NCBI GenBank assembly: GCA_051294905.1
Contig: CM119378.1
Location: 19,778,001 to 19,842,000, forward strand
Reading direction: 5' to 3'
DNA from: Botryllus schlosseri
Taxonomy: Eukaryota
DNA length: 64,000 nucleotides
Of this stretch, positions 18,901 through 54,391 are shown in pieces (position 1 is the stretch's first letter; the number at the start of each line of letters is the position of its first letter). The position numbers and the translations under genes are program-made. Under the pieces are notes generated by a model. It saw nothing but the letters and a program-made list of their open reading frames with translations. It was not told the origin of the DNA and did not search any database.

Positions 18901-20349
18901 GCAGGGCTGTCAAACACGCAACCGGAGGACCGGATAACGTCCTTCATGCAGACGATCTCATCAGAACCGTGATGAAATCTGTGGCAGACCCAAGCAATAA
19001 CCAGAACTCACATTAGAGATGGTCTAATTCAAAACCTATGCTTCACTCCACTCCTGTAGGCCTACACTAGACAAGGCGAAGCTTCGCTACCGTGACGTCA
19101 TATTACAGGACAATGAGTTCATACCTCATCGCGGAATCCGATAGTGGGCGCTAAAGAGTATCCAGAATTTTATCGACAAAAATATGGTAACCCGAAGCTA
19201 CACTCATTCTTTGATCATATCCACAATAATCATAAACATGTTCTCTGACTGGCACCTTTTGATCGTGCAAGTGCAACGTGCTGATATTCGAGCGGTAAAA
19301 CGCGCTAGGAATAAACATAATACAATTGCGAGTCACGATCGATGGGATACAGTTTGTACGTGTAGCCTATTATGTGCAGCTGCAATATCCTCATATCAAT
19401 GGTTAGCTTGTTTTAAGAGAGCATACATATTACTTCCATATCCTCACTATATAATGAAATATCAATATGGAGTTTTGGTCTACAATCCCAATTTTATCTA
19501 GTGCGGCTCGTGAACGGATTACGATGTTGAATGCAGCCCGCGGGCAAAAAGTTTAACCAGCTCTGCTCTACTCACTGACTTGGACTCGGACTTAACACGG
19601 AGTTACACATTTTTGAATGTATTTCCGTGAGGGCGATTTGATAACGGAGAATATCGTTAACTAATATTATCAATTGTCAAATTCTTCAGCGATAACATAG
19701 CATTGCGTTACAAGCCTACATTCTAACGACACTTCGAGTAGGCCTATACTACTTAATACTCGTCGGGAATGTGATTGACTACGTATGTAATTTGAATTTG
19801 TAATTGTGCTGTCACATCCAAGAACCCATTGGTGTTGCATCTGTGGATTATAGCTCCGCGCTATATCTCGCCACTTTTCAATTACAAAAATAATACAGAG
19901 CTTCTTGGAGGTACAGAACTTCAATATACAATTGAATAGTGTATTCATATTGAAATGAAACCGAATATTTTCAGCTGACCCTCGTCAGGGGTAATCGTCA
20001 GCAACTAGTAGAGAACCGGAAAGAACATTTGAACAAGCTATTTGGGGTACAGAACTTCAGAATAGCGCGAAACAATAACTTCATATTGTCAATTTATTCG
20101 CTAAAAGCTTTTGGACTGACTCTCATCAGTAACGAACGTCAGTAATACGGTGAATCAAATTCGAAATGTAGGAGCTCTTTTGTCTGTATGACGTAATACT
20201 AGCAAAAATAAACCACCAGTTATCAGGCAAGATACCGTAGTAACGATACAAAACAAACGTAACGAGTACATTGTGAATCAACAATCGTATCTCGAAATAT
20301 GACGTCACCCCCATGAAATCAGATATTCAGCCTCAAGAAAAACGGCTCC

Positions 20350-24074: not shown

Positions 24075-25640
24075 CACCTGAGGTCTACGCGTCCATCAGA
24101 CCGGTCGGAGCACGGAGGCCACGAATGAACGGACTGCCAAAAATTCATAAAGCCAACGTGCCCGTTCGACTAATTCTTTCCATGATTGGATCGGCTCAGA
24201 ACAAGCTCGCGAAGTGGCTTATCGGTATTTTGGAACCCGTGCGTTCCATGTATGGTTCGCATTGTGTCGCTGATTCGTTTACATTCGCGCACGATATGAA
24301 AACCACCGACCTTCCAAACTCGAATATGTTTCTCGGCTCTTATGATATCGTTAGTCTCTTCACGAACGTGCCGCTGAAGGAGATATTGATATTTGTGCGG
24401 ACGCGCTATGGCTATATGGTGGTGGTGATTTAGCACCACCTTCCTTCTCCCGTAAAGTGTTCGTTGAACTTCTTAATATGGCTACTTGCTCTGTTGAGTT
24501 TAATTTTAACGATACCATGTACATGCAAACCGACGGTGTAGCTATGGGTAGCCCTCTTGGCCCGATATTAGCGAATATATTTGTGGGATTCCATGAAGAC
24601 AGACTTTTCGCCGCAGATAAAACCAAGCCTCCATTCATGTACCGTAGCTATGTCGACGACACCTTCGTTATCTGTCACAATGAGACGGAGTTCGATGACT
24701 TTTTTGATAACTTGAATTCTCTACACCCGTCTTTAAAATTCACATTTGAAAAAGAGCGTGCTAACTCGCTACCATTCTTAGACGTTCTAGTAGAAAAACG
24801 GGGTATTAGCTTTGTCACTTCGGTTTACCGTAAGCCAACGTTTACAGGTCAATATATACGCTTGAATTCGTTTAGCCGGAGTCGCCGTAAACTAAATTTG
24901 ATTGGCACGTTGGTGCACAGAGCCTTGATGATATGTTCGGATGTAAAATTAAACACGGAGCTAGAAGATATCCGCAAAATCCTAATCGATAACGGGTACC
25001 CCGAACACATCATCAAGAATTCTGTGGACAGAAAACTCAGTAATTTCAATCCCAGCAAATCACAAAATACGAACACACGGTCTGAGGAGAATGTATATAT
25101 ACATTTACCGTGGCTGGGGCCCATCTCTTCCCGTTTTGAAAAGTAATTGATTTCCGCTGTAAATCGCTGTTACGATAACGTAAAAACAAATGTTGTGTTT
25201 ACCACCAAACAATTTCTTCCCGCAACGCGCAAAGATGTTCTTCCTGCTTCTCAACAAAGCAATATAGTCTATCTATGATTTCAAGTGCCACTGTGATTGT
25301 CGGTACGTGGGAAGAACAACTCAGCGCTTGCAGGAACGCATCAAACAACATGTTCCGAGCGTTATTAGATCGCACACATTGGATTCTCGCGAAGACGCAG
25401 CCGTAACTGATCTGCGATTATTAGAACGTAATCAGACCATGGCTATGAACTCTGCCATCGGCAAGCATTTGGCTGAGAATGCAACTTGCGCTAAAAACTA
25501 TCGCGATGAATGATTCTCTATATTAGGTAGAGGCCGCACTAATTTCCATCTCTGTCTGCACTGGAATCAACTTATATTAAAATCCACCGACCGCGCTTGT
25601 GTCAGCGGAAAGAATTTTTAGTCGATCTGAAAATTGGCCA
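24075..25640 (+). mobile_element. Penelope-like retroelement (RT + GIY-YIG endonuclease), 5'-truncated and disrupted
   Basis: RPRMNGLPKIHK, SYDIVSLFTNVPL, QTDGVAMGSPLGPILANIF, YVDDTF, LPFLDV, VYRKPT; then NIVY-DFKCHCDCRYVGRTTQRLQERIKQH. Frameshift near 24385, stop at 25144, CTAT duplication near 25268. Confidence 0.92.
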
Positions 25641-27103: not shown

Positions 27104-27627
27104 TCCAAGACCCCACAGTTGGATGGATGTTTTCACCAGTAGGCCTACTTGTGAATCCAACATTCATTCTACTCAGTAGGCAGAGAGTTTATGTAACCTA
27201 ATTGCACTGAGCGCTAAATTATCTATAATCCGTGACTGAATCGGTCAATAATATTGGTAATTGCATATATATTGCTATAAATTTTTTGTCCTCTCAGAAT
27301 TATCAGATTGTCCAGTAAAGCTGAGTCAGGTGTTGTCTTGGGAAATTTAGGGCATCTTATTAATAATGACAAATATTCGGGCGGGCCTGTTGGAATCATT
27401 CGCTACATGTTATTATTTCGTGACCGACTGTATGTTATATGGTGAATAGATATGGGAATCGTCCAGGCGTTCTAAATGAAAAGACGCAGACGATTCCAAA
27501 TTGCTATTTCTTCACCGGCAAATAGTTTTTCCCTGTGGTATGGTATTTGTCCTGTGGGGTACAGATTGCCAGGACGAGATTAGGCGCCAGTCATTTAGGA
27601 TTTTCGGAGTCCCATGTTAGCCTAAAC

Positions 27628-29913
27628 TAGGGTTACCATATTTTTGTGAAGCAAATTCCGGACACTCTTTAGCGTCCACTAGCGGATTTTAAAATTAGAT
27701 ATAACACATTGTCTGTCAATATGACGTCACACTAGCAAACATTGCCCATCGACTTGATACAGGAATGCGGTGGGACATAAACATAGGTCATGAATTGGGC
27801 CATCTATAATGTGATGGTGATTGATACTTGCTATGGTCTGCAATAGATTTTTCCATTGGCCGGATGGAATCGTCTGGCGGGCCGTGTCTGGCCTGTGGGG
27901 ATTGTGTCTGACAGCCCTGCTATACTGTTAGGTCGGGGCGTCTATCTGATTGTGTGTTTTTTTAATCAGGTCCGAAACAAAAATTTTTCTGCCCCCTTCC
28001 ACCTAAAAATAATGCACTCATCTTGGGCCCACCATAGGGTAATCGATGTAGCTTCTCGGGCAATACTATATGCAGCATTTGGCTGTTAAATATTTTAATT
28101 GAATTCTGTCTTGATTCTTCCATAAGGCTACTATGAAATGAACCAGCAGGTTGCACATCCGGTGATATCCAGCCTTTTATGGTCGCGACCTCAGTTCAAA
28201 CTTGAAAATGTTCCGTGGCCCAGCCGAAAACTTGATAAGCTGATTACTAAAAAATTCAGCTTGCTCAAACTTACTCCCGGTCTAGGAAGGTGATTAGGCC
28301 TCCGTCTAACCTCATCGCGATCCCCAGACAAAGGCAAACGACCCCAAGATTTGGAACCACTATCTATGAGTGCAGGGCCGTAACAGCACTTCGTCAGCCC
28401 CCCCCCAAAACTTTGGTCTTGGGCTCCCCATAGGGTTATAGACCTAACTTCTGGGGGGCTTCGCCCCCCAGACCCCCCCTCCGGCGATACACTGTTTACC
28501 ACTATTGATCATATTCATTGGGAGTATGTTTAGTGAATCAGCTTTTGCCGCCTGAGCGCGCGAAGCGCGGGAAATTTCTAGAATTCATGATTTCATCGGT
28601 CAGTATGATCGGGAATTGCATATATTGGTATCAATTTTATCTTCTCTCTGCTCACGTAACCAGATTTGCCGGTAGAGCTGATTGAGGTGTGTATGAAAAG
28701 GTAGGACCACTCAATAATAATTAAACATCTTCGGGCGTATACCCGTTGGCAGGAACGAAACAGCAAATCGTCAGGCCCCAAAAAACGTGGGTCTTGGGCT
28801 CTCATAGGGTGATAAAACGACCCCCCCCCCATCACGTTGTTCGCGTTTGTCACGAAATTATCTGTACTGCATTGTGAGCCAGCGCGAAGCGCGAAAATTT
28901 TCGATAATTTATGATAAAATCGGTCAATGAGATCGGCGATTGCATATATATTATGCTATCAATTTATTGTCCTCTCTACTCACGTAATTAGATTTACCGG
29001 TAGAGCTGAGTGAAGTGTCTTGAAAACGGGAGGGCCCGTAAATAATGATTAAACATCTTCGGGCGGGCGGACCCGTTGATATGACTTCGTTACATGATGT
29101 TATTTCGTGACTTCCAGTCTGCTATATCAAAAAATATAGAATCGCCCAAACGTAGGCTTCTAAACTAAGAGACGCACACGATTTCAAATTGGTATTTCTT
29201 CACTGGAATAAAATTTTTCCCAGCGGGATGGTATTTGTCTTGTGAGGTTCAGATTGCAAAGACAGGAACATTCGGTGCCAGTCATTTAGGCGCCTATGGA
29301 CAATTAAACCTATATGCATTTTGTATAGCCTATATAACGAAGTCTTCGGTCTGCATAAGGGCATAGACCTTTTCGGCCAAGCTTTTCTCGCTGCCGATCG
29401 TTCTGGCACACTTCTTGGAGTCGCATGTTATATGGCCTAAAACTTGATTGTATGTCATGGTTGGTCGTGGCGCGGTAATGGCCCAATACCCTACAATATA
29501 GAGAAACGACTACATGAAATCGCGCGCAGCGCGAAAAATTTTGAAAAAATTGCATAAATTTTTAAAAAATACACATATGATTTATGCTAATTCACGAAAT
29601 AATTTTGGGCCCCCTTCGAGCTCGCCCCCCCCCAATTGGGGGGTTTGGGGTGCGGCAGTTACGGTGCTGAATGAGTGAAGCATCCAATCGGCCTTAACCA
29701 ACTCTAGGAATATACCGTTAGCTTATAATTGCGATTACGATTAGACTTATTTCAGTAAATGATGGTTATTCATATTTATTTTTGATTGCGTTTTGGCGAG
29801 GGTGGTGCCTGGTGCTCATACTAATATCAATATACGTTACATTCCTCCCGGACGCGGATTTTCCAGTGAAATTCCGGACATGTTCGGGAAATTCCAGACG
29901 TATGGCAACCCTA
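27628..29913. mobile_element. Non-autonomous hAT-like element (2.3 kb), nested
   Basis: TIRs TAGGGTTACCATA / TATGGCAACCCTA; perfect TSD GCCTAAAC. Confidence 0.85.
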
Positions 29914-30489
29914 GCCTAAACATCATTATGTGTTGGCGCGTCGTGGCGTGGTAATGGCTCCCGCTGAAATGCCTATATTTATAAATCATGCGTATTTCTT
30001 GGGGGAAGGGCACCCTGTAATGAAGAAAATTTGTGACACTAAATCGCGCAAAAATATTTGAAAATAGTTGGATAAAGTTTCAAAAATTACTATATGATTT
30101 ATGTTCATCCACAAAATAATTTTGGGTACCCTTCAAGCTCGGCCCGGCTCCAATTGGGGAGTTTGGGGCTCGGCAGTTACTGTCCCACATAAAATGAAGT
30201 AACCGAAAACGAATGATCACGCAAACTGCACGATTTGGTGAGTCAGCTGGTAGGCTAGTTGGTGGCTTGCATGTCGTCAAATGACACGACTTGAACGTCA
30301 AGTCAAATCGAGCCTGTTTTCAGATCTAATTTGACCTAAATCAGTTTAAAATTTGATGTTTTATTTATTTTAGCAATCAATAAGCCTTCAGCATATTTCA
30401 TCTTGAAATTAGGGTATAAAATTGGAATACACCTGGCGGACCGGCAGGAAAGTCGTCGCGGACCGGCGGTTGTGAACCACTGACCTAGA

Positions 30490-30596
30490 TGCATGTTTTT
30501 GAAATTCTCCATTTGCTGACGATTGCCCTTGAAGAGTGTTAGCTCGAAAAGCTTCGGGTTTTAATATATTTCTGCAATGAATATATTATTAAAATG
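30490..30596 (+). pseudogene. I-group LINE RT relic, part 1 (FADD motif), left of the giant insertion
   Basis: TTT GCT GAC GAT TGC (FADDC) at 30512-30526; colinear with the KYLG region beyond 44472. Confidence 0.55.
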
Positions 30597-33500
30597 AGTA
30601 GTATATAAATGGGCGATTTGCGCGCATGCAAGGATTATAATAAACAAACAAAGATTATCAATATAATAATTAATGAAAGAATTAGCTAATTCTCAATTTT
30701 GCAGCAATACTTTTATGACCCTGTGTGCGGCAATAAAAAAAGGGGGAATAATTAACGATAGAGAGAAAACGAACAACGAATCTGGATTGACCTTTGTACA
30801 CAGAAATGAGACTTGAGTCATTCTACTTGTACTTATTGACCTTTGTACTCAGACATGAGACTGGAGTACTTCTACTTGTACTTTTCCACTCCTGATTCTA
30901 CCTCGCCTCTGGACACGAGACTTGTGTATTTTCGTACACGACAGGGCTTGATAATAGTTGCCTGCCCAGACCTGTTGTTCCGTGGTACAATTTCGTGACG
31001 AGGCTTGGGGACAATAGTCCGTCATAGCACCCTGGTTGACTTGTCGTTCCGCGGTTGATTCAATATCGTGTACGGTGGGTCATAGGAATAATTGCCGGTC
31101 GTGACGTCAGTATAGTTTTCTCCTAATCCGTGAGATCCTGGTGCGTGTTTTAGATGTCAATAGGCTCGGCTGTACAAAGTGACGCTTGTCTGTCTCATAC
31201 TGTCGTACTTGACCCCTTTGATTTGTTGTCGACACAGAGAGTAACGAGAAATGTTCTGTTATGGTTATAAATATGCGTGTCATATCGAGAACAACAAGGA
31301 ATGCCGTGTAGTGGAAATGTGTATTAGGCGCCCCAGCATAGATTAACTTAAATAAAGTAACATTATGAGTAAAAAAATAAGTAATTGAAGAAATAGCTGA
31401 TTCTCAATTTAGCTCACATCAACGTGTTAACTTCCGATTTTACGTACCTAATAATTGGTGTAATTGCTGTTCCACACCTTTACCGCGTTCTAGCGTCTTC
31501 ATATAGGACATAGACAGTCCAAACCAAACAATGTATTTATGATGGGTTCTTTTTACTGCTACACGTCTGGTCAAGCGTAATCATGACGGTGTCTGTACAT
31601 GATATACAATTTACCGCGTTGCTTTACCCGTTTGTACGATATATATCGATCGCGAGCTCTCCACGCACGACGCACTTGTCGTTCGAGAGCGACTCATTTC
31701 GCTGCAGACAATCAGCTGTGTACCGTAACATATCCTCAGCACTTGTTATGCCAACACCTCCACGCATATTTACAATATCATACTAAGGAACTATTGCTTC
31801 GGCAGCCACGCACTGTCGTTCGAATTCGACTCATTGCGCTGCAGACAATCAGTTGTGCTCGTGTGTGTCGTAACATATCCTCAACACGTGTTATGCCAAT
31901 ACCTCCAAGCATATTTGCGGCATCATACTACGGATATATTGAACCGGCGAAGTGTTACCGTCAGAGAATTGCTGCGCCACACCTTCGAGTCTCGCATTTC
32001 CCGTTCGAACTCGGTAACTGCGAGTACGATGTCAGATTCAATTGTCCAGTGACGAATCGGGGTAGCTCGCTTCATCGGGGTGGGCTGACCTTATTTAGCT
32101 GAAACGCGCTCGGTGGTGCAATAATGGGAATGAATTGTGACAGATCATATGTGATGCGATCTATAGCCTGCTTTTGGTGAGGTGTAAAGATGAGTGGGAG
32201 ATTTCGAAATTGGAATCCACTGCGACTATAGGATTGCGAAATCAAAGTCCAAAAAATCCGACTGACCCGTAAGATCCTGGTTTCTCCATATATTAGGCTG
32301 GGTAAAATGTGGCATAAATCCGACTCTCAAAGACACTTGGCCGCATCCAGTCCGGGTTTAACCAAAACTGATGAAATCTGCACCGGGTCCGGAAACGAAT
32401 CGTGACCACCCCCGTCCAGACAAAATAGTTCTGCTGTAAGGGGAGTGTCGTTGTACATTAATTTGCGTACAACGAGACTTTGTATCGACTCATTGACGGA
32501 CTTCTGTTTGTATCGCGTTTGGTTTAGAATCCCAATTCTATATAGTGCGGCCCGCGAATGGATTCAAATGTTGAATGCGGCCCGCGAGCTTAAAAGTTTG
32601 CCCACCCCTGATGTATATTGTACCACTTGAATCGATCTGTTGGCGAACTAATGCTTTGCCCGTCTGTAACATACACATATCGATCACGAGCTCACCACGC
32701 ACTTGCCGTTCGAGAGCGACTGATTTCGCTATAGACAATCAGTTCAGTGTTGCCAATTTAGCGATTTTCGCGCTAGATCTAGCGATTTTTCATCCGGTTT
32801 AGCGCTAAAAAATATGGATCTAGCACCCAGCGATAAATCTAGCGATTTTTGAAAAGGTATTTAGCGATTATTTAGCGTTTTTTACCGAAAATAACTAATA
32901 AAGATCGGTTCTGGCCGACGACTATGGCGACTCATCTGCCACCAGAGTGCGGACTCCAATGATATGTAATGAAATTAATGATGGATTACTAACGTACGGA
33001 TAGATACGCAACTCCTGGCGGTTACGCATGGGCAAACAGTGTCTCTTCTTGCTGTGTAATCTAAAAGTAGCATAATTGACAGTGCTACATCTGGCGACCT
33101 GAGCGCTGCAATTTAATATGATTGGTCTTGATCGAAAGCTAGTGTCGCAGTGATTTCGAAGATACAAAATAAAATCTCGTCAGGACAATGGAACCATGCA
33201 CCCCGAAACAGCCCTCGAAGTCTGAAAACCAGCATTGCTTCAATAATGGCACCGCCGCAACACAATGGACATAACAATGATCAATCTCGTCCAGCGATTG
33301 TTCTGATCAATGTCGATTTTCAGACTCTTGGGGCTACTTTGAGGTCGTTGCATTGTCTTTACAAGAATTTAATTCGTATTGGCGGAATCAGTGTGACACT
33401 GGCGTTTAAGACCAGATTCATTAAATTTCTTACTCCGGGTTGGTCCTCTACTTTTAGTGGCTGGCAAACCAGGTTCGATAAGTCGTGTTGTATCGGGTCA

Positions 33501-36500
33501 AGTCGCATGTTGCGTACAAGTGTGTCAAGTCGCATGTCGTGTTCAAGTATGCCAACTCAGTTTCGAGAAGTCAAGCGCATTTCCACGGTACATCGCATCA
33601 CTATTCACGGACGCATGGAGCAAGGCACGCTTATAGAGTGAGCGGTTATGCCTGCAAACCTGGTCAGTGGTCACGTATAGCGATCATTGCGCAAAGCGAT
33701 CCGCTCTACCGAAACGCACTGCACGTTTTGTTCCGCTTAGAGATAAATATCACGTATTATGAACTAGAAATATGATAAGGGACTTTGGCCCCCAGGCGAG
33801 TAAAATATAGCTGAGAAGAGTGTATTGATATTATGGTTCAATTTAACACCTTCAGCAATTAATGTAGATCTAGCGCTATTTTTTAGCGCTTTTTTCTCAA
33901 TATTTAGCAACATCAAGCGATTTTTGACACCAGTTCTAGCGATTTTCTTCCATCCGGAGTTGGCAACACTGAATCAGTTGTGTTCGCGTGTACCGTAACG
34001 TATCCTCAACACTTGTTACGCCAACACCAATATCATACTAAGGAACTATTGCTTCGGCAGCCACGCACTGTCGTTCGAATTCGACTAATTTCGCTGCTGA
34101 CAAAATATCCTCAACAAATGTTATGTCATATTTGCAGCATCATACTATGGACGTATTGACTCGGCGGAGTGTTACCGTGAGAGAAATGCTGTTTGACCCC
34201 CTCGTCCTAGCCTTGGATTTAGCGTCTCGAAAAATTCCACCAGAAGAAGCTGTGATCGAGTGTCACAATCAATGTCAGCCACGCTCCATCAATCTGATGT
34301 TTTGACAAAACCAGTACGTATACGCCGGAGATGAGCATTGATTAGGATTTAGGAAAAACGTATTTGTGAAATTTTTCTGGATTAGGTTGAATTAAGTTTT
34401 GAGATTGATCTACTATATCGTACGGGCAACTACTACCGAGACCCGTCGTGACGAAATCGGATCAATCAGTCATGGAACGACAAGTTAGGGCTAACCGCTT
34501 ATATTCCTAGTTTATTCTTGAAAGCTCTATAGATTACTGGTTAGCTGTATGTTGTGGGCGATTGACAACAGTTAGTTGTCGCTGTTATACAATTTACACT
34601 TTGTGTTATACATTCCTCGTTACCACCGCGAACTAGGAGGTCAATCACGACGACGGGCAACTACTCCCAATTGGCAGAATACTGTTTGATTCATCTGTAT
34701 AATCAGGTTTAGCACCACAAGAAGTATATTAGTAGTTTATGATTGAATGAAATCTATCCATCAAACAACGATAACAACTATATAGATCTCGTTCGTATTA
34801 CTATGAAAGCTAATCGATCACGTCCACACAATATTATTACGTAGCATTCATTTGGTAGGGTTGTTGTTGTTAGTATTGTAACATGGTGATCGGCTACTAT
34901 GACCTTTACACCAGTTCTAAAAGGGTAAGGAATTGGTTAGTGTTACAGCTGTCTGACGGTGGGGTATTCGACAAAATTACTATGTTTTACTACGGAAGCT
35001 ATGATCACACGGACGGGCTCTCATCACTTATCGTACGAATGCCTGTATCCTCGGTGTGATGCACACGAATCAGCTGTGATCAGTCGAGTGTGACACGATC
35101 GAAGTCACTATTTACTGTTTGAAATAACTCATATATTCCGTTCAAGAAATGTCCCTCATTTGTCCAAATATCCTCCTTTTTGTCAAATTGTCTTCCTTTT
35201 TTTTATCTTAAAATATCTAAAAAGACTACGAATGACACTAAATGATGACCTAGTTTACGAGAGATGGGTATTTCGGGAGTCAGGGGACAAAATGAGCTTT
35301 TTTAGTCAACACCATGAAATTTGATGTATATACATACAAATCATTCGTCCGCTATAGTAACTTTTTGCAGCTCGTGAAAAGTATCCTCCTTTGGGGGCTT
35401 ATGTTAACCCTATATTTTACCAGCTTTTAGTCTCGGACTTGAACATCGAAGTTTGCACATAATTTCACATTACATTCCCTATGACAAGCATAGGCTATTA
35501 CGGTTATGGGACCTGTGCTCTCAAACATGTATTGATGAATAGCGAAAGCGACCACAAGCTATCATCACATGAAAAACAAACGAGCTCACTAGCCGGTCCC
35601 TGTTGGGATGTACACACCAATGGCCATGTCCATGATCTGAAGTTTGCACATAATTTCACATTGCATTCCCATGACTTGGCACAGACTATTTCGTGGGTAT
35701 GGGGGCTGTGCTTTTCAAACATGTATTGATGAATACCGAAAGCGACTCAAGCTACCATTACACGAAAAATCGAGCACACTCGTTCCTCCCTGTCGGGGTA
35801 TACCCACCTTCGTTTGCGTACAGACAAATGTTTCCATGTTGCAGCGAGAATAGCGGGGAGGGTGGTAGATCATTATCACAATAAGTACCTTGGGATGAGA
35901 GTGAAATCGACATCGTCCGTTAAGCGACTGAAGCAAGTCGCCACTACAATCGCTCTCTGCGTAGTGCGTAAACGCAACGTACAAAGCGCTGCTGGGTATA
36001 CGAAACTACGGATTCTAGCCAAAGCGAGGTTATCGAGATAGCTGTAGCGATTCACAGCACATGCTAAATCTCGTTGAAATGGGAGTACAAAATGTATCGC
36101 TTTGAAATACTCAAGTAGAAGTAGTTGTTAAAGAGTAATTCGCACCGTAAAATTGCAACTGTTTTGGAGTGCTAATGTCACACAATTGCTATATTGATCA
36201 CTCGCTTATGTGTAGAAAGCAGAAATTGACCCCTGCGTTGTACGATCTCGTGGCCTTGACAAACGTTCTATAGTTCAAAAGTCACTGTCATGTTGGGCTT
36301 TGATTGCTGTTGTACTCTTGTTAGCGTCGATATTCATTGGTACGTGTTTTCATGGTCTAAAATGTTGGTTATTATAGAGTGTTTTCGTAAAAGGTTGGGA
36401 GCCACTGATTTAGGCCTTGATGGGTTCAACCAAATACACGTGTAACACATCCTATTCCTGGGCCGTAACCGAACCTTTACCACACCTTCTATACGATAAA

Positions 36501-36855
36501 CGTCCTTTTTACCCAGAGGTAAGCCGACGACATACGGGAAATGCAGGCGCTGACGTGCTCTTTTGTTATTCTCTCCGCGTAGCATGAAAGAAGGTATTGA
36601 GGTACCCGCCCAAGGTCACTGCGAGCGTAAGTTAAGTCAATCTCTGTATATGTAGTGTTAATGTCGCACCGTCGCAATAATGATCACTTATGTGTAGAAA
36701 ACAGAAATTGACGACTCGATTACTTGTACGAGCTTGTAGCTTTGGTAAGCTTGCTGAAGCGGAAAGCCACTCAAGTTGGACATTAAATTGATTGGTGTTC
36801 GTTCTCTTGTTAGCGTTGATAGTCGTTGGTACGTGCTTTCGTGCTTTAAAATTTA
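30597..36855 (+). repeat. Left inverted arm (6,259 bp)
   Basis: Reverse complement of 38507-44471; mirror coordinates sum to 75068 (outer part) and 75362 (inner part). Confidence 0.96.
32745..33971. mobile_element. Non-autonomous hAT element nested in the left arm
   Basis: TIRs CAGTGTTGCCAA / TTGGCAACACTG; perfect TSD AATCAGTT; TAGCG subterminal repeats. Confidence 0.9.
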
Positions 36856-39800
36856 TGTTATTGTTATCATCGAAGGATGGTCATAAATAGGCAGGAACAA
36901 CTGATTTAGACCTTGATGTGCTCAACAAAATACGCGTGTAACAGTGTAACACATCCTACTCCGGGCCGAAACCGATCTTTTACCACACCTTCTATATGGT
37001 AAACGTAGCTTTTACTCATACGTAGCACGATGATCTGTGAAGACGCAGCACTAACGTGCCATTTCGTTATTATTTCGACGTCACATGACAGGGTAGGTAG
37101 ACATTGGGCTGTGGTACCCGACAATACAGTGTTCAACGCGATCGATAAGTACCCCCACTGCGTGCTATACGTTTAAATAAATATTTTTACTCATTTCCGC
37201 CGCCTAGTGTGTAGTAATGAAGAGGGTACATAAATGAAGTAGTAATATAAACTAGACTGTACAACTGACTATGATTCCCGATAATACGAATTAATGATGA
37301 TTTGGAAATGAGCTAAGAAGTATTAGACATAGAATCGGTATTTCGAAAGGATAGGTCTTTGAATTTGAAGTGGTTGAAACCCTTCCTAAGCCACTGTTAG
37401 TATCGCTGAATGTGAGCTAACAACGGCCGCAAGCACATCACATAACAGAACATCGGTATCACGATTTACGACACATGTTTTATTCTACAGTTCGAGTTCC
37501 ACAGTGAAATCAGTTCTAGAATGCGCAACTAGAATTCGAACAACTGACTTTTTTAACTCCGCAACTATAACTACATAAAACCGCAGATGGCTGACCGTCA
37601 ACCAATTAGTTAGATAATTCGTACAAGTCCGCGAGCTATCGTTACCACCAGGCTCGGTTATGATTTATTTTGGTACCCGATGATTTTATTGCTTTGATGT
37701 GGAAATTTGTCATGTATTATTTGATGAGTGTAAAACTTCAAATAGATGTCCGCAGTTCGTACTACTAGCCAAGGAGCAGCGTTCCAAATGTGTTTAACAC
37801 ACAAGAAACGTCAATAATTGCTTTACTATTTGAAACTAAGCCGAGTGGAGGGTATTATTCTCCCCTATGCGAAGTAGTGTGTCTGCGATTTGTTGATAAC
37901 TCGCACACTGTGGGGGTTACGAGTGATAACTTTTGTAAAAAGACATATTAGCATACAGCAGGGGTCCTCACGTATCACGGTCAACACTGCATAGTATCAA
38001 TTCTTATTAGGATCGCATTCAATACTGCATTGTATCAATGCCTATACCCAGTGAAATATGACGGAGTAGAGATAACAAATTAGCACCTTGGTGATTACGT
38101 TTCGACTACTTGTGGGATTTTTCTGTAACCGTAATTATAGTCGGATGATTCAGCAGTAATCGTAATCGCAATCGATTCAATTGATGAAATAATCATCCCC
38201 ATGCCCACTAACACACATTACAAAGCAAATTAACACACATTTAGGCTTGTGTAAGTTATTGTCTGATACCGATGTGTTACAATGTGTAACCGATTTTATA
38301 GTCACATGACATCAAGACATCATATCTAATTCATTAGTTAAGTTGAGTATGTCTTATGGTAATTTATCAACCCAATTTTTTGAAGTTTATTCTATTTCGC
38401 TAGGACCTAAATCTCCTCTTTTCATTACCGCACAGCGGGATACCCGGAAGTATTGCTTGCAAAAGTGTGAATCAGCTGTTTCTTTATTTATCTTTAAAAT
38501 TCGTTGTAAATTTTAAAGCAAGAAAGCACGTACCAACGACTATCAACGCTAACAAGAGAACGAACACCAATCAATTTAATGTCCAACTTGAGTGGCTTTC
38601 CGCTTCAGCAAGCTTACCAAAGCTACAAGCTCGTAGAAGTAATCGAGTCGTCAATTTCTGTTTTCTACACATAAGTGATCATTATTGCGACGGTGCGACA
38701 TTAACACTACATATACAGAGATTGACTTAACTCACGCTCGCAGTGACCTTGGGCGGGTACCTCAATACCTTCTTTCATGCTACGCGGAGAGAATAACAAA
38801 AGAGCACGTCAGCGCCTGCATTTCCCGTATGTCGTCGGCTTACCTCTGGGTAAAAAGGACGTTTATCGTATAGAAGGTGTGGTAAAGGTTCGGTTACGGC
38901 CCAGGAATAGGATGTGTTACACGTGTATTTGGTTGAACCCATCAAGGCCTAAATCAGTGGCTCCCAACCTTTTACGAAAACACTCTATAATAACCAACAT
39001 TTTAGACCATGAAAACACGTACCAATGAATATCGACGCTAACAAGAGTACAACAGCAATCAAAGCCCAACATGACAGTGACTTTTGAACTATAGAACGTT
39101 TGTCAAGGCCACGAGATCGTACAACGCAGGGGTCAATTTCTGCTTTCTACACATAAGCGAGTGATCAATATAGCAATTGTGTGACATTAGCACTCCAAAA
39201 CAGTTGCAATTTTACGGTGCGAATTACTCTTTAACAACTACTTCTACTTGAGTATTTCAAAGCGATACATTTTGTACTCCCATTTCAACGAGATTTAGCA
39301 TGTGCTGTGAATCGCTACAGCTATCTCGATAACCTCGCTTTGGCTAGAATCCGTAGTTTCGTATACCCAGCAGCGCTTTGTACGTTGCGTTTACGCACTA
39401 CGCAGAGAGCGATTGTAGTGGCGACTTGCTTCAGTCGCTTAACGGACGATGTCGATTTCACTCTCATCCCAAGGTACTTATTGTGATAATGATCTACCAC
39501 CCTCCCCGCTATTCTCGCTGCAACATGGAAACATTTGTCTGTACGCAAACGAAGGTGGGTATACCCCGACAGGGAGGAACGAGTGTGCTCGATTTTTCGT
39601 GTAATGGTAGCTTGAGTCGCTTTCGGTATTCATCAATACATGTTTGAAAAGCACAGCCCCCATACCCACGAAATAGTCTGTGCCAAGTCATGGGAATGCA
39701 ATGTGAAATTATGTGCAAACTTCAGATCATGGACATGGCCATTGGTGTGTACATCCCAACAGGGACCGGCTAGTGAGCTCGTTTGTTTTTCATGTGATGA

Positions 39801-41390
39801 TAGCTTGTGGTCGCTTTCGCTATTCATCAATACATGTTTGAGAGCACAGGTCCCATAACCGTAATAGCCTATGCTTGTCATATGGAATGTAATGTGAAAT
39901 TATGTGCAAACTTCGATGTTCAAGTCCGAGACTAAAAGCTGGTAAAATATAGGGTTAACATAAGCCCCGAAAGGAGGATACTTTTCACGAGCTGCAAAAA
40001 GTTACTATAGCGGACGAATGATTTGTATGTATGTACATCAAATTTCATGGTGTTGACTAAAAAAGCTCATTTTGTCCCCTGACTCCCGAAATACCCATCT
40101 CTCGTAAACTAGGTCATCATTTAGTGTCATTCGTAGTCTTTTTAGATATTTTAAGATAAAAAAAAGGAAGACAATTTGACAAAAAGGAGGATATTTGGAC
40201 AAATGAGGGACATTTCTTGAACGGAATATATGAGTTATTTCAAACAGTAAATAGTGACTTCGATCGTGTCACACTCGACTGATCACAGCTGATTCGTGTG
40301 CATCACACCGAGATTACAGGCATTCGTACGATAAGTGATGAGAGCCCGTCCGTGTGATCATAGCTTCCGTAGTAAAACATAGTAATTTTGTCGAATACCC
40401 CACCGTCAGACAGCTGTAACACTAACCAATTCCTTACCCTTTTAGAACTGGTGTAAAGGTCATAGTAGCCGATCACCATGTTACAATACTAACAACAACA
40501 ACCCTACCAAATGAATGCTACGTAATAATATTGTGTGGACGTGATCGATTAGCTTTCATAGTAATACGAACGAGATCTATATAGTTGTTATCGTTGTTTG
40601 ATGGATAGATTTCATTCAATCATAAACTACTAATATACTTCTTGTGGTGCTAAACCTGATTATACAGATGAATCAAACAGTATTCTTCCAATTGGGAGTA
40701 GTTGCCCGTCGTCGTGATTGACCTCCTAGTTCGCGGTGGTAACGAGGAATGTATAACACAAAGTGTAAATTGTATAACAGCGACAACTAACTGTTGTCAA
40801 TCGCCCACAACATACAGCTAACCAGTAATCTATAGAGCTTTCAAGAATAAACTAGGAATATAAGCGGTTAGCCCTAACTTGTCGTTCCATGACTGATTGA
40901 TCCGATTTCGTCACGACGGGTCTCGGTAGTTGTTGCCCGTACGATATAGTAGATCAATCTCAAAACTTAATTCAACCTAATCCAGAAAAATTTCACAAAT
41001 ACGTTTTTTCTAAATCCTAATCAATGCTCATCTCCGGCGTATACGTACTGGTTTTGTCAAAACAACAGATTGATGGAGCGTGGCTGACATTGATTGTGAC
41101 ACTCGATCACAGCTTCTTCTGGTGGAATTTTTCGAGACGCTAAATCCAAGGCTAGGACGAGGGGGTCAAACAGCATTTCTCTCACGGTAACACTCCGCCG
41201 AGTCAATACGTCCATAGTATGATGCTGCAAATATGACATAACATTTGTTGAGGATATTTTGTCAGCAGCGAAATTAGTCGAATTCGAACGACAGTGCGTG
41301 GCTGCCGAAGCAATAGTTCCTTAGTATGATATTGGTGTTGGCGTAACAAGTGTTGAGGATACGTTACGGTACACGCGAACACAACTGATT

Positions 41391-42452
41391 CAGTGTTGCC
41401 AACTCCGGATGGAAGAAAATCGCTAGAACTGGTGTCAAAAATCGCTTGATGTTGCTAAATATTGAGAAAAAAGCGCTAAAAAATAGCGCTAGATCTACAT
41501 TAATTGCTGAAGGTGTTAAATTGAACCATAATATCAATACACTCTTCTCAGCTATATTTTACTCGCCTGGGGGCCAAAGTCCCTTATCATATTTCTAGTT
41601 CATAATACGTGATATTTATCTCTAAGCGGAACAAAACGTGCAGTGCGTTTCGGTAGAGCGGATCGCTTTGCGCAATGATCGCTATACGTGACCACTGACC
41701 AGGTTTGCAGGCATAACCGCTCACTCTATAAGCGTGCCTTGCTCCATGCGTCCGTGAATAGTGATGCGATGTACCGTGGAAATGCGCTTGACTTCTCGAA
41801 ACTGAGTTGGCGTACTTGAACACGACATGCGACTTGACACACTTGTACGCAACATGCGACTTGACCCGATACAACACGACTTATCGAACCTGGTTTGCCA
41901 GCCACTAAAAGTAGAGGACCAACCCGGAGTAAGAAATTTAATGAATCTGGTCTTAAACGCCAGTGTCACACTGATTCCGCCAATACGAATTAAATTCTTG
42001 TAAAGACAATGCAACGACCTCAAAGTAGCCCCAAGAGTCTGAAAATCGACATTGATCAGAACAATCGCTGGACGAGATTGATCATTGTTATGTCCATTGT
42101 GTTGCGGCGGTGCCATTATTGAAGCAATGCTGGTTTTCAGACTTCGAGGGCTGTTTCGGGGTGCATGGTTCCATTGTCCTGACGAGATTTTATTTTGTAT
42201 CTTCGAAATCACTGCGACACTAGCTTTCGATCAAGACCAATCATATTAAATTGCAGCGCTCAGGTCGCCAGATGTAGCACTGTCAATTATGCTACTTTTA
42301 GATTACACAGCAAGAAGAGACACTGTTTGCCCATGCGTAACCGCCAGGAGTTGCGTATCTATCCGTACGTTAGTAATCCATCATTAATTTCATTACATAT
42401 CATTGGAGTCCGCACTCTGGTGGCAGATGAGTCGCCATAGTCGTCGGCCAGA
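41391..42452. mobile_element. Mirror copy of the nested hAT, one end deleted
   Basis: Starts CAGTGTTGCCAACTCC after AACTGATT; the other TIR falls in the deleted segment. Confidence 0.88.
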
Positions 42453-42545
42453 TTTAGAATCCCAATTCTATATAGTGCGGCCCGCGAATGGATTCAACAT
42501 TTGAATCCATTCGCGGGCCGCACTATATAGAATTGGGATTCTAAA
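42453..42545. repeat. Perfect hairpin, 45-bp arms with 3-nt loop (CAT)
   Basis: TTTAGAATCCCAATTCTATATAGTGCGGCCCGCGAATGGATTCAA-CAT-TTGAATCCATTCGCGGGCCGCACTATATAGAATTGGGATTCTAAA. Confidence 0.95.
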
Positions 42546-44471
42546 CCAAACGCGATACAAACAGAAGTCCGTCAATGAGTCGATACAAAGTCTCGTTGTA
42601 CGCAAATTAATGTACAACGACACTCCCCTTACAGCAGAACTATTTTGTCTGGACGGGGGTGGTCACGATTCGTTTCCGGACCCGGTGCAGATTTCATCAG
42701 TTTTGGTTAAACCCGGACTGGATGCGGCCAAGTGTCTTTGAGAGTCGGATTTATGCCACATTTTACTCAGCCTAATATATGGAGAAACCAGGATCTTACG
42801 GGTCAGTCGGATTTTTTGGACTTTGATTTCGCAATCCTATAGTCGCAGTGGATTCCAATTTCGAAATCTCCCACTCATCTTTACACCTCACCAAAAGCAG
42901 GCTATAGATCGCATCACATATGATCTGTCACAATTCATTCCCATTATTGCACCACCGAGCGCGTTTCAGCTAAATAAGGTCAGCCCACCCCGATGAAGCG
43001 AGCTACCCCGATTCGTCACTGGACAATTGAATCTGACATCGTACTCGCAGTTACCGAGTTCGAACGGGAAATGCGAGACTCGAAGGTGTGGCGCAGCAAT
43101 TCTCTGACGGTAACACTTCGCCGGTTCAATATATCCGTAGTATGATGCCGCAAATATGCTTGGAGGTATTGGCATAACACGTGTTGAGGATATGTTACGA
43201 CACACACGAGCACAACTGATTGTCTGCAGCGCAATGAGTCGAATTCGAACGACAGTGCGTGGCTGCCGAAGCAATAGTTCCTTAGTATGATATTGTAAAT
43301 ATGCGTGGAGGTGTTGGCATAACAAGTGCTGAGGATATGTTACGGTACACAGCTGATTGTCTGCAGCGAAATGAGTCGCTCTCGAACGACAAGTGCGTCG
43401 TGCGTGGAGAGCTCGCGATCGATATATATCGTACAAACGGGTAGAGCATCGCGGTAAATTGTATATCATGTACAGACACCGTCATGATTACGCTTGACCA
43501 GACGTGTAGCAGTAAAAAGAACCCATCATAAATACATTGTTTGGTTTGGACTGTCTATGTCCTATATGAAGACGCTAGAACGCGGTAAAGGTGTGGAACA
43601 GCAATTACACCAATTATTAGGTACGTAAAATCGGAAGTTAACACGTTGATGTGAGCTAAATTGAGAATCAGCTATTTCTTCAATTACTTATTTTTTTACT
43701 CATAATGTTACTTTATTTAAGTTAATCTATGCTGGGGCGCCTAATACACATTTCCACTACACGGCATTCCTTGTTGTTCTCGATATGACACGCATATTTA
43801 TAACCATAACAGAACATTTCTCGTTACTCTCTGTGTCGACAACAAATCAAAGGGGTCAAGTACGACAGTATGAGACAGACAAGCGTCACTTTGTACAGCC
43901 GAGCCTATTGACATCTAAAACACGCACCAGGATCTCACGGATTAGGAGAAAACTATACTGACGTCACGACCGGCAATTATTCCTATGACCCACCGTACAC
44001 GATATTGAATCAACCGCGGAACGACAAGTCAACCAGGGTGCTATGACGGACTATTGTCCCCAAGCCTCGTCACGAAATTGTACCACGGAACAACAGGTCT
44101 GGGCAGGCAACTATTATCAAGCCCTGTCGTGTACGAAAATACACAAGTCTCGTGTCCAGAGGCGAGGTAGAATCAGGAGTGGAAAAGTACAAGTAGAAGT
44201 ACTCCAGTCTCATGTCTGAGTACAAAGGTCAATAAGTACAAGTAGAATGACTCAAGTCTCATTTCTGTGTACAAAGGTCAATCCAGATTCGTTGTTCGTT
44301 TTCTCTCTATCGTTAATTATTCCCCCTTTTTTTATTGCCGCACACAGGGTCATAAAAGTATTGCTGCAAAATTGAGAATTAGCTAATTCTTTCATTAATT
44401 ATTATATTGATAATCTTTGTTTGTTTATTATAATCCTTGCATGCGCGCAAATCGCCCATTTATATACTACT

Positions 44472-45990
44472 AAAATGTATATAATAGTAAGTACTTATAC
44501 TTAGAAGTTGCGTTGTGTTGACGGTGTCAACATCAATCTGGTTGAGCTGTTTATGGGCGGAGATAATAAAGTTAGCAAATCCGGGAGAATGCTAATAATG
44601 TGATTAAAAACTGCTAATCGGGACGCATTTTAGGCGCAGATAATAAAGTTAGCTAATCCAGAAGAATGCTAATCGTGTGATTAAATACTGCTAATCGCGA
44701 CGTATAAAGTTGGAAAAGGTTACGCGCGATGGTTAATCGAGGTGTCCCGAGTTTTCAATCAAGTGGTGTTATATGTTGCATCATAATGCAAAACGCGTTA
44801 TGGGCTGTCACTTGTCAATTTGTTGAACGAAACAGAAGCCTGCTGGTAACTATTCTGCCACTGCAATAGGTAGAATTATCATCATCGCGAAATGAAATTC
44901 GTGTCCAATTAGTACGGTACAGCTAAGAAACGGGTTATGGAATATTGGTGGGTACAAAATTCGTTGACTGTTTAGAGAAGCCATTACCTAGGAGACAGAC
45001 AATCGGCACGGTCATTATCGGAAATATTTGTGCGTGTAGGAATGGTACGCATTGTACGCAGTCTGTAGTTTGTTCCGGTTTGTTAAATCATCAGATTAAC
45101 ACTAACTTTATGCGCTGCGATCAACCGGTTTCCTTAATCCTGGATTGATAAATCCTGACGAACGCGATAATCAACCTTGTTGCTAATCCAACTTTATTAT
45201 CTCCGCCCTAAGTATCTGGGAATTACGTTTGATAAACATCTCTGGTACAAATTCCATATAGACAGTGTTGTTAAAAAGTGTAGTCACAGGATCAATATGC
45301 TGCGTGTACTTTGTGGTAAGAACTGAGGATGTAATAAATCGTCATTATTAGAGTTACACTGGTCTCTAATCAGGTCTGTCATTGACTACGCTATGCCAGC
45401 ATACTACTTCTCTCCGAAATGCGATTTGAGAAAGATCAAAGTGGTTCAGAACAAAGCATTGCCTATATGTTGCGGAGCAATGAGCAGATCCCCTGTTTGT
45501 GCGTTACAAGCAGCATGCAACGAACCCCCTTCACCTTAACTTAGACACAAATATCTGTGCATGAATTATCGCTGTTACCTACTCGAACAAAATGCACATC
45601 AACATTCCGTGCTTGGGCTATTGCAAGATTCATGGCACGAGATACACGGTCTAATTAGACCTAGCTTTGTCACGTACAAAATTTACTCCAACGTCCCGTT
45701 GTTTCGGAAAATTTCAGTGGAGAAAACCCTCACTCACTATCAACCTCCGTGGATGGCCCGCCCACCAATCTTCAATAAGAAACTGCTATGGTTACACCCC
45801 AAGAATGTTACCCAAAGATGTCATAAAAAGCATGTTTCGGTGACTATATCTTTGAATTCCACGACGGAGCAATCGAAATATATACCGATGGGTCCAAGAC
45901 CTCGATAGCAACCGCTTACGCTTTCTATATCCCCTCACGCTTGTTATCGGTCAGTAGAAGCTGTCATGTCCATTATTTTGTATTTTCCGT
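44472..45990 (+). pseudogene. I-group LINE relic, part 2: RT end, connector and RNase H start; interrupted by a MITE
   Basis: CVDGVNINLVELF|KYLGITFDKHL..HIDSVVKKCSHRINMLRVLCGKN*G...SLIRSVIDY...VQNKAL.ICCGA...PPW...IYTDGSK (45878-45898). Confidence 0.85.
44555..45208. mobile_element. PIF/Harbinger-like MITE inserted in the LINE
   Basis: TIRs GGGCGGAGATAATAAAGTT / AACTTTATTATCTCCGCCC; 3-bp TSD TAT/TAA; removal restores ...LF-KYLG; two ~77-bp subterminal repeats at 44560-44710. Confidence 0.72.
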
Positions 45991-51738: not shown

Positions 51739-54391
51739 TGGGATTACCATATTCTCGTGGGCCAAATTCCGGACACTTTTTTGTGCCCCTAACTGGTTTT
51801 AAAATGATATATGAACACATATGACGTCACATTGGAAATGCTTGGGCTCTCGATTGTACGCAGGACTGGATTTTGTAATAGGTCGTGAATTAACTAGACC
51901 AGTGGTTCTCAACCGCCGGTCCGCGGACCGGTGCCGGTCCGCGACGACATTCCTGCCGGTCCGCCAGGCATATTAGAATTTTATACTTTAATTTCAAGAT
52001 GCCATGTTGAAGGCTTGTTCATTGATAAAATAAATAAAACATCAAATTTTAAACTGATTCATAACTTCGTGAGGTAACATTAGGGCTGGAAACATGTTCG
52101 ATTTGACTTGAAGTTCAAGACGTGTGTCACTTGACGACAAGCAAGTGACAAGTACACAGAACAGATACGAGCCGACGCATCGCTAAACAGCACAGTTTGA
52201 TCATTGGTTTTCGATTCATTCATTTTGTGCAGCACCGTAACGGGGGCACCCGAAACCGCCCAATTGAAGAGGGGCCGAGCTTGAATAGGGCTCAAAATTA
52301 TTTCGCAAATGAACATAAATCATAGCATATTTGAAACTTTTTCGAACATTTATCAATTTCTTTTCGCTCTTTGCACGATTTAGCATCCCTAAATGTATTG
52401 CTTAGCCTATTAGGTGCCCTTCTCTGAGAAATACGGAATGATATATAGGTATTTCGGCGTCAGCCATTACTACGCCACGACGTACCAGCGCATAATGAAG
52501 CTTAGGTTAACATGGGACTCCGAAAGGTGGGCCAAAAATTCGGCCGCGAGAAAACCGCTTCACTCGTGAATGATCGAAAATTTTCGCTATTGGTGCGATT
52601 AAGCTACGTAAACTCTCTGCTTACGCTCAGTAAAATAGATGTGCTCCCAAGTACAGGTGAACACATCCACCCAACTGTAGGGTTTGGGGGTGAAGCCCCC
52701 GGAAGTTTGACTTATCGCCCCGTGGGCGCCCCAAGACCAGCGTTTTTGGGTTGGACTGACGAAGTACTTTTTCGGCCCGGATTTGCGGATGGCTGGTATA
52801 GGTGCTAATGTGTTTTCTTGCGACACGCATTGTATTCGTATAGGCAGTTGCCAGAGTAGCCTGTTTCTGGTGGCAGTGGGCAATGAGCAATGTAGCACGA
52901 AAAGGGGCTTGGTTTGACTCCGATACGATTCTTTTCTCGATATCGTCAAAGAGAAGAATATTATTAGAATTGGCGTGGTCGGTTAAGCCCACGGCGTTCG
53001 GCGGGAAAGACTGTATGAAGGTCTCCCGGCGGTAGCACGTTTATCTGGACAAGGCAATTTTACCTCGACTCGGCAGACTCACTACCATAAAATCACACGG
53101 ATGCCATCATGAATAATAATTAAATAGGATCAAAACCCTCTAAATTTCACTCTCTAGCACCATATAATTGCAAAAAACGGTTGCGTACTCTACATTTTGG
53201 CTTCATTTCAATTTTGAAAGTTCACCGGTCCGCCAGACATTTTTTGAAATTTTACCGGTCCGCGAGATGAAAAAGGTTGAGAACCACTGAACTAGACTAC
53301 TGCGACATCTCGAATTTGAGCTCTGGTGCTAAGGCTAGGTATTCTAATTTCGTCTGCAACTGACTTCTATGGCCTGGCCCGCCGGCCGTGTATTTGACAA
53401 CCCTGCTATAATGTTAGGTCGGTTAAGATATAGGACTATATGTGTTGTAGTCAGGGTCAAAACCACACTTTTAAGCCCCTCCCGCCCCAAAAAACACTGG
53501 TCTCAGGACCACCATAGGGTGGTCGATGTAACTTTTTTTGCGCTTAATTACTATATGCATCTGGTTTATATGTGCATCTGGTTGTTAAATTTTGTGAATT
53601 AATTCTGTCAATAATATTGGTTCTGATATCCCTATAAAATTTTCATCCTCCCTCAGCCCACGTGACCAAAGTTAGCGCTAGAGCTTGCGGAGATGGTGAC
53701 TTTGAAAATGCAGGTAACGTTATTGTACATCACTAAGTCATGTTAATGTCACGAATAATACTATCAATGGGTTGAAATGCCGATCTGCACCAGCAGGTTG
53801 CACATCCGGTGGTTTCGAAACTTTTTTGGTCGCAACTCCATTTCCTATTTGAAAATGGCTCACCTCAAAATTTGGTTAGCTGATTACTAAAAAACGGCTA
53901 GCACCTTTGCTCTGACTTACTCACGGCCTACTTTTGAAGATGATTACGTTCAACATCTTCCCGATCCCCAAAATAGAGACAAGCGACCCCAAGCTTGACA
54001 ACCACTATCTTTGAATAACGCTTCCAAACGGCCTTACCGACACTAGGAATATACGGTGTTCTTAAAAATGCGATTTCAGTTACAGTATTACAGTATTACG
54101 GTAAATGATAGTTACTTTAATTCATTTTTTACAGTAATTTGTGCGAGGACAGGGGTACAAATACTAAAAGTAATATAGGTGAAACTAAAGTAAATTAAAA
54201 TTAAATTTCAAGGAGGCTAAATCTTCCCCAAAACAAGATGTTATTTGTTTATGTCCGAAAAAATAGTAAGTTCCCTTCAAGCCTTCAAAATTCCGGGCAT
54301 TTAAGCATATTTCAGCATTTCCTCCCGGACGCAGAGGTAATCAATGAAACTCCGGACATGTCCGGGAAATTCCAGACGTATGGCAACCCTA
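51739..54391. mobile_element. Older copy of the 27628-29913 family hosting a nested Charlie-like element
   Basis: Ends TGGGATTACCATA / TATGGCAACCCTA; TSD TTCTAGTA / CTCTAATA (6/8); internal blocks shared with 27650-28330. Confidence 0.65.
51900..53289. mobile_element. Non-autonomous hAT (Charlie/Buster-like) element
   Basis: TIRs CAGTGGTTCTCAACC / GGTTGAGAACCACTG; perfect TSD AACTAGAC with central TA. Confidence 0.9.

Follow-up and report, generated by a model that had tools for sequence, protein, structure and literature searches.

The 64-kb window analysed here (64,000 nucleotides of Botryllus schlosseri contig CM119378.1, positions 19,778,001 to 19,842,000 of the forward strand, with no N and no masking) contains a 13.9-kb insertion that consists mostly of two long inverted arms on either side of a unique spacer. 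The insertion is real and of unusual structure: its ends are of the Maverick (Polinton) type, it is gene-less, and it is a rare structural variant. It begins with AGTAGT (30597-30602) and ends with ACTACT (44466-44471), and a direct repeat of AAAATG, a perfect 6-bp target-site duplication (TSD), abuts both ends. The parts of the element are as follows.

30597-44471 (no strand): whole element, 13,875 bp, with AGTAGT...ACTACT termini
30591-30596 (no strand): left TSD, AAAATG
44472-44477 (no strand): right TSD, AAAATG
30597-36855 (+): left arm, 6,259 bp, non-coding, in the ancestral state at an indel block
36856-38506 (no strand): unique spacer, 1,651 bp, 38.7% GC, with no open reading frame (ORF) that matches a family
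38507-44471 (-): right arm, 5,965 bp, a mirror copy of the left arm

An inverted-repeat finder and self-BLAST agree on this palindromic structure. The arms pair without gaps in two blocks, 30597-32576 with 42492-44471 (1,980 bp, 3 mismatches) and 32910-36855 with 38507-42452 (3,946 bp, 13 mismatches), so that 88.1% of the element is self-complementary. The arms are 99.7% identical (0.27% divergence), differing by 16 substitutions (7 transitions and 9 transversions) and one indel block, and the outermost 1,022 bp of the two ends have no mismatch at all. The initial annotation of this locus had given the same termini, TSD, arm and spacer lengths and a self-complementarity of about 88%, every number of which was confirmed, and had put the substitutions between the arms at no fewer than 15. 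The flanks outside the termini are not mirrored (8 of 15 positions match in a manual count of the flank letters), and the boundary of the inverted repeat at AGTAGT is therefore sharp. A 33-nt terminus probe matches the two ends and nothing else in the window, with a chance expectation of 0. A 6-bp direct repeat that exactly abuts an inverted repeat bearing a published 6-nt end motif is far beyond chance.

The element is placed in a repeat-rich, gene-poor region, since its left flank (28597-30488) is itself built of dispersed repeats, 73-92% identical to 51894-52506, 18068-18439, 27239-27599, and 54020-54391. On the right side, at a distance of 85 bp from the insertion site, a 77-bp tandem repeat of 1.9 units occupies 44556-44702.

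Gene content and terminal signature

Stop-to-stop translations of the left arm and spacer were compared with Pfam, and neither the 36 pieces of at least 60 aa nor the 83 pieces of 34-59 aa gave a credible match, the best E-value over all 119 pieces being 0.019; the earlier statement that no ORF resembles a known protein is thus upheld. Ten ORFs of the window, six of them from the arm, were also scanned against Pfam, with no match for the arm ORFs, and Rfam and tRNA scans returned no matches. A spacer ORF matched nothing in a protein-database search, and an exact-ORF look-up was likewise empty. In the rest of the window a reverse-transcriptase fragment is the only family match. The initial annotation had proposed a profile search for relics of PolB, INT, and MCP genes, which returned no Polinton family: the retroviral-type (rve) integrase has no Pfam match in the left arm and spacer or elsewhere in the window, and the virion module is represented in the left arm and spacer by neither an adenain-like protease nor a packaging ATPase, capsid genes being probably outside the reach of Pfam.

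Two ORFs of ~170 aa are longer than dinucleotide shuffles would predict (the second-longest ORF reaches 169 aa in 0 of 300 shuffles), but they were rejected as genes and attributed to chance or to repeats: compared with a ~90% identical metagenomic contig (L001), their mismatches fall 15:15:9 over the codon positions, with no third-position bias, and their translations look non-coding. The only matches to spurious arm ORFs in protein-database searches are two short contigs of one ENA metagenome assembly (ERZ650156), each at ~1.2x coverage, of which L001 is ~90% identical to 31172-32281 and L002 is 88-90% identical to 32745-33972; neither extends to a terminus or to an arm/spacer junction. Upstream of its homology to the arm, L001 carries unrelated sequence (L001:1-527) that is rich in TATCCG-like short repeats and ends in CACTG, and that resembles the end of a further transposon which entered the L001 lineage. 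If so, the match between L001 and the arm may reach closer to the terminus than is seen in the contig.

In vertebrate Mavericks the commonest end motif is 5'-(AGT)2//(ACT)2-3', accompanied by a perfect 6-bp TSD (Barreat and Katzourakis, PMC8097293); the alternative motif is (AG)3//(CT)3. The repeated end motif has been interpreted as a slide-back signal of protein-primed replication, and intact vertebrate elements measure 12,723-24,620 bp, with terminal inverted repeats (TIRs) of 46-1,447 bp (PMC8097293). Polintons generate TSDs of 6 bp (PMC10045372). The element described here has these cis features, namely the (AGT)2//(ACT)2 motif, the perfect 6-bp TSD, and a length of 13,875 bp that lies within the ~13-25 kb of autonomous elements (PMC8097293, PMC10748475). 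Accordingly, two earlier claims held up against the published figures, that the ends are of the Polinton/Maverick type and that the size is near that of autonomous elements (13.9 kb within 12.7-24.6 kb; PMC8097293). The other superfamily with 6-bp TSDs, IS3EU/GingerRoot, has the termini TA..TA or occasionally TG..CA (PMC10045372), whereas this element ends in AG..CT. Judged by six bases and the length of the TSD, the end signature fits Polinton/Maverick, and no rival superfamily was found to fit.

In other respects the element departs from an autonomous Polinton/Maverick: no gene or relic of pPolB, integrase, protease, or ATPase was detected in it (capsid genes being probably outside the reach of Pfam), its TIRs are of ~6 kb and occupy 88% of its length, compared with 46-1,447 bp in vertebrate elements, and its interior consists of repeats and a nested hAT-like element. 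It fails a definition by gene content and agrees with one by cis features, and can be filed only as 'Polinton-ended, non-autonomous'. Across the window the CpG observed/expected ratio is 1.0-1.17 at 37-46% GC, with no CpG depletion, which argues against a vertebrate-like host genome with heavy CpG methylation of the vertebrate type.

Relatives of the ends and arms were sought with short probes. A 26-mer of the terminus had 0 matches in IMG/VR, a 22-mer of the terminus had 0 in the JGI metagenomes, and a conserved 22-mer of the arm had 0 in metagenomes. An 18-mer of the terminus had three internal matches in IMG/VR, none of which could be extended, and these were dismissed as chance.

The arms are composed mostly of complex single-copy sequence, with many short tandem and dispersed repeats, among them the following.

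30786-30883 (+): subterminal tandem repeat of two 49-bp units, mirrored at 44185-44282
31670-31941 (+): tandem repeat of 1.9 units of ~145 bp, mirrored at 43127-43398, with other copies at 32652-32744 plus 33980-34200 (split by the nested element described below) and at 34028-34103

There are also two direct copies of ~135 bp near 35445-35769, and a ~220-bp unit is present at 36300-36509 and at 36788-37013.

Nested element, proposed precursor, and possible fold-back junction

Elements of the hAT superfamily are recognized by an 8-bp TSD, short TIRs beginning with CAG, and, in autonomous members, a transposase. The left arm contains an element, here called TE-A (transposable element A), that has both the TSD and the TIRs; it has no transposase and is therefore non-autonomous. 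It is also present in the right arm.

32745-33971 (+): TE-A, nested non-autonomous hAT-like element, 1,227 bp, with 12-nt TIRs starting with CAGTG
41391-42452 (-): right-arm copy of TE-A, with 165 bp absent at one end

The TSD of TE-A is a perfect 8 bp, AATCAGTT, at 32737-32744 and 33972-33979, and its insertion splits a copy of the ~145-bp repeat unit. A larger nested element between a 22-nt inverted pair at 31039 and 34464 was considered and rejected, as it has no TSD. TE-A has a copy in L002 (L002:62-1250, 88-90% identical), where the homology is bounded by the 12-nt inverted termini and the sequence beyond them is unrelated; this copy sits in a different context, and the TE-A family is therefore present in at least one other genome.

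Since both arms carry TE-A at the mirrored position, its insertion predates the duplication of the arm, and what underwent mirror duplication was a precursor that by then had no genes and resided in a chromosome. The chronology is that of a non-coding precursor, into which TE-A was inserted, followed by mirror duplication and then by decay.

The one indel block that distinguishes the arms comprises 333 bp in the left arm and 39 bp (42453-42491) in the right.

32577-32909 (+): block found only in the left arm, 333 bp, of which at least the last 165 bp are ancestral
42453-42545 (no strand): local perfect palindrome in the right arm that replaces the 333-bp block, a snap-back deletion scar

At this indel the ancestral state is that of the left arm and the derived state that of the right, because the last 165 bp are present in L002 in their left-arm form. 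The 39-nt filler at 42453-42491 is the exact reverse complement of 42507-42545, and the pivot between the two is a natural 15-nt mini-palindrome. An indel that is structured and can be polarized argues that both arms are genuine DNA and have been evolving independently. The hairpin on which the deletion pivots belongs to a dispersed repeat of ~82 bp (32518-32599 and 19474-19554, 83% identical), in which two GCGGCCCGCG-like boxes stand around a small hairpin.

Evidence of what the right end may have been before the duplication comes from a 24-nt motif that occurs at five sites in the window (two per arm, and once inverted in the spacer at 38459-38482), with a chance expectation of 0.

30679-30702 (+): subterminal motif, outer copy, 83-106 nt from the left terminus, mirrored at 44366-44389
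31390-31413 (+): subterminal motif, second direct copy, within a TIR-like stretch (31328-31413), mirrored at 43655-43678 and conserved in L001
38415-38491 (-): truncated relic that resembles a right end, on the right-hand margin of the spacer, containing the motif copy 38459-38482

The relic and segment 44325-44399 of the present right end have the same orientation and align with ~75-78% identity and a score of 56 (mean 19.6 and maximum 36 over 300 shuffles). The relic ends 15 bp before the junction of spacer and right arm at 38506. Colinear projection places the old right terminus ~58 bp past that junction. This suggests a precursor of ~8 kb, defined as coordinates only, which would have consisted of the left arm, the spacer, and a further ~58 bp, and which would have lost its right tip and received the mirror copy in its place. 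If the right end was newly copied from the left, the identity of the two ends over 1,022 bp is accounted for, although the relic is only ~75-78% identical.

36844-36853 (+): 10-nt CTTTAAAATT in the innermost part of the left arm, a candidate fold-back pairing site

The 10-nt CTTTAAAATT recurs at 38492-38501, and its complement occupies 38509-38518, among the first bases of the right arm. These copies and the complement would provide the intrastrand pairing that is needed for a fold-back with a loop of 1.65 kb. Both the junction and the second, smaller lesion in the right arm look like products of fold-back copying.

Origin of the palindrome

The explanation to which we give about an even chance is that fold-back copying of the intact left end rebuilt a lost end on a linear copy of the element, which then integrated. 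The precursor would have been a non-coding Polinton/Maverick-type derivative of ~8 kb that had resided in a chromosome long enough to receive the hAT-like insertion, and that retained only cis-acting parts: the (AGT)2/(ACT)2 termini, the subterminal repeats, and the 24-nt subterminal motif. On a linear copy of this precursor without its right terminus, the 3' end would fold back onto a short A/T-rich inverted match ~1.65 kb upstream, and a polymerase would copy the left 6.26 kb until it reached the point at which the template naturally ends. The run-off would yield a second, identical terminus and bring the length to 13.9 kb, within the range of intact elements; a retroviral-type integrase acting in trans would insert the molecule and make the 6-bp duplication, after which 16 substitutions would accumulate across the arms and one snap-back deletion would occur in the right arm. 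Run-off on a linear template would explain without any extra step why mirroring ceases precisely at the terminus, beyond which lie unique flank and a direct TSD. We infer that the molecule being copied was a linear, protein-primed replicon outside the chromosome, with polymerase and integrase supplied by a helper, and the right-end relic together with the signature of the fold-back junction makes copy-back during protein-primed replication plausible, though unproven. The fuller proposal is tentative and somewhat doubtful: the integrated DNA would be a 'copy-back defective genome' of a Polinton-type replicon, a gene-less passenger that lost one origin, regained it by fold-back run-off on a linear protein-primed intermediate, and so roughly doubled to a packageable size before the integrase of a helper inserted it.

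The initial annotation had likewise seen a copy-back structure, in which one end was copied over the coding core. One end is indeed duplicated in inverted orientation and replaces the other. Copying over a coding core is not supported, as the arm is without any gene relic and a nested hAT-like element with its own 8-bp TSD is found in both arms; the right end that was overwritten by copy-back may instead have been that of a non-coding precursor. The replication, integration, and packaging by a helper that were also envisaged there are a matter of inference only.

Adenoviruses and linear plasmids provide precedents in which an end is regenerated by fold-back or panhandle copying. The element resembles copy-back or snap-back defective viral genomes in that a terminus and its adjoining sequence stand inverted in place of the other end, giving two identical origins and a molecule capable of forming a panhandle (PMC13506859); such genomes are, however, extrachromosomal and arise during infection from coding parents, whereas the element is integrated with a TSD and its parent was gene-less. 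Butterfly Polintons with TIRs of ~2 kb that duplicate the hexon and adenain genes are insertion-polymorphic, and Polintons that carry other transposable elements as cargo have been described (Pannagram preprint, 10.1101/2025.02.07.637071). They share with the present element inverted repeats well beyond the usual few hundred bp, although they are coding, and it is non-coding, with a repeat three times longer and a unique core of 1.65 kb. That Polintons with enlarged TIRs are still mobile is counted in favour of copy-back followed by integration. No precedent for a palindromic, gene-less (non-autonomous) Polinton derivative was found in the literature searched, a scope that did not include Repbase.

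Several observations weigh against this origin. The case consists of a single copy in a single assembly, known from the assembly sequence alone; no second palindromic copy with a different TSD and no autonomous helper Polinton was found (the former in the window and by the IMG/VR and JGI metagenome probes, the latter by Pfam scans of the window and terminus probes of the same two collections), and the PolB, integrase, protease, and packaging-ATPase families have no match anywhere in the 64-kb window. The comparison with the TIR of a real Polinton covers the 6-nt end motif, and the (AGT)2 motif has been catalogued in vertebrate Mavericks, whereas the genome here is not vertebrate-like in its CpG content. 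Simple fold-back priming does not explain the five bases (38502-38506) that separate the 10-nt match from the arm, and the nested TE-A and repeat-rich interior point to a long chromosomal residence that would suit a rearrangement in place equally well.

Such a rearrangement, the main rival and one that we consider rather unlikely, would have begun when a resident ~8-kb element suffered a double-strand break ~58 bp short of its right terminus and the left arm was copied by fold-back, after which the new strand would have annealed to the terminal ~58 bp by synthesis-dependent strand annealing; the original TSD would be retained, the palindrome would never have transposed, and no helper would be required. 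The product would be identical to that of copy-back, and because there is only a single copy the two explanations are inseparable. In favour of an extension in place, the precursor was long chromosomal (TE-A and its own TSD are in both arms), the fold-back scars are equally typical of host repair, and there is one copy with no helper in view. With chromosomal fold-back inversions the element shares a loop of kb scale, a junction placed on a short inverted match, and a second small snap-back scar, but such copying normally continues into flanking DNA, whereas here it halts precisely at the terminus and leaves the flanks unmirrored. An extension in place would demand fold-back synthesis of 6.2 kb followed by precise re-annealing on just ~58 bp, and would also demand that these last 58 bp be far better conserved than the adjoining 77 bp, which are ~75-78% identical to the left end, when no mismatch separates today's two ends in their outer 1,022 bp.

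Long-read and amplified libraries are known to fail on long palindromes, and an arm divergence of 0.27% is within the range of heterozygosity, so that one might suspect an assembly artefact, either from a long read that was chimeric or folded back or from a head-to-head join of two haplotype or paralogous copies. Such an artefact is very improbable, as the initial annotation had argued from the TSD and the substitutions: the outer ends are a transposon terminus with a direct TSD and unique, non-mirrored flanks on both sides, whereas an inverted join of haplotypes would mirror the flank; the spacer is 1.65 kb of sequence and not an adapter; and the 16 differences between the arms are accompanied by a structured snap-back deletion, the ancestral state of which is confirmed by an outside sequence, L002. 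Nor is it probable that the element is a long-TIR or foldback-type non-autonomous member of some other DNA-transposon superfamily with 6-bp TSDs, for which it may be said that neither a Polinton gene nor homology to a Polinton TIR has been shown, and that IS3EU/GingerRoot also makes 6-bp TSDs (PMC10045372). The termini of that superfamily are TA..TA or TG..CA, not AG..CT, and the doubled AGT/ACT trinucleotide is a specific, published Maverick end motif. In the element, as in the Foldback (FB)/Galileo long-TIR transposons, the inverted arms are very long and contain internal repeats, and genes are few or absent. Foldback/Galileo elements have other termini and another TSD length, and the arms found here are mostly complex single-copy sequence with only short two-copy tandems instead of Foldback-type arrays of tandem sub-repeats. 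Finally, the locus might serve as a source of hairpin RNA, read-through of the 6-kb inverted repeat yielding double-stranded RNA and small RNAs against elements that share its ends and against the nested hAT-like family; this would be compatible with any origin. The structure would suit it (6-kb arms that are 99.7% identical, and a loop of 1.65 kb), but there is no sign of selection, the arms are decaying, one of them has suffered a deletion, and the chance of such a role is very slim.

The linear, protein-primed mechanism of Polintons is largely inferred from their gene content. If copy-back followed by integration is true, the element would preserve in its sequence a natural trace of the linear extrachromosomal replication proposed for them, and would be evidence that Polinton machinery acts in trans on non-coding passengers (trans-mobilization); it might also indicate a constraint on length. 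This replication is a proposed model in the literature, and at the time of PMC8097293 no viral particles had been seen. Even if the palindrome was formed in place, it shows how TIRs of kilobase scale can arise in Polinton-type elements, and the locus is a long perfect hairpin that could feed small-RNA pathways.

Other features of the window

The left portion of the window contains an open frame of 795 codons (1171-3558, + strand) that encodes an acidic, Pro/Glu/Ser-rich protein with no Pfam match. Within the frame are four tandem units of 219 bp (73 aa) at 2158-3114, 77-82% alike, and an inverted partial copy of the unit, of ~240 bp, lies 3.3-3.9 kb downstream at 6290-6533.

A reverse-transcriptase fragment at 24355-25143 (+ strand), with a weak match to RVT_1, has 3,054 relatives in ENA contigs of eukaryote size; the top-scoring of these are 57-58% identical, and identity is up to 65% among the matches listed. 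The precomputed domains of the relatives are RVT_1, PF26215, and, in some of them, PF01541 (GIY-YIG), and this suggests that the fragment may be the remnant of a Penelope-like retroelement.

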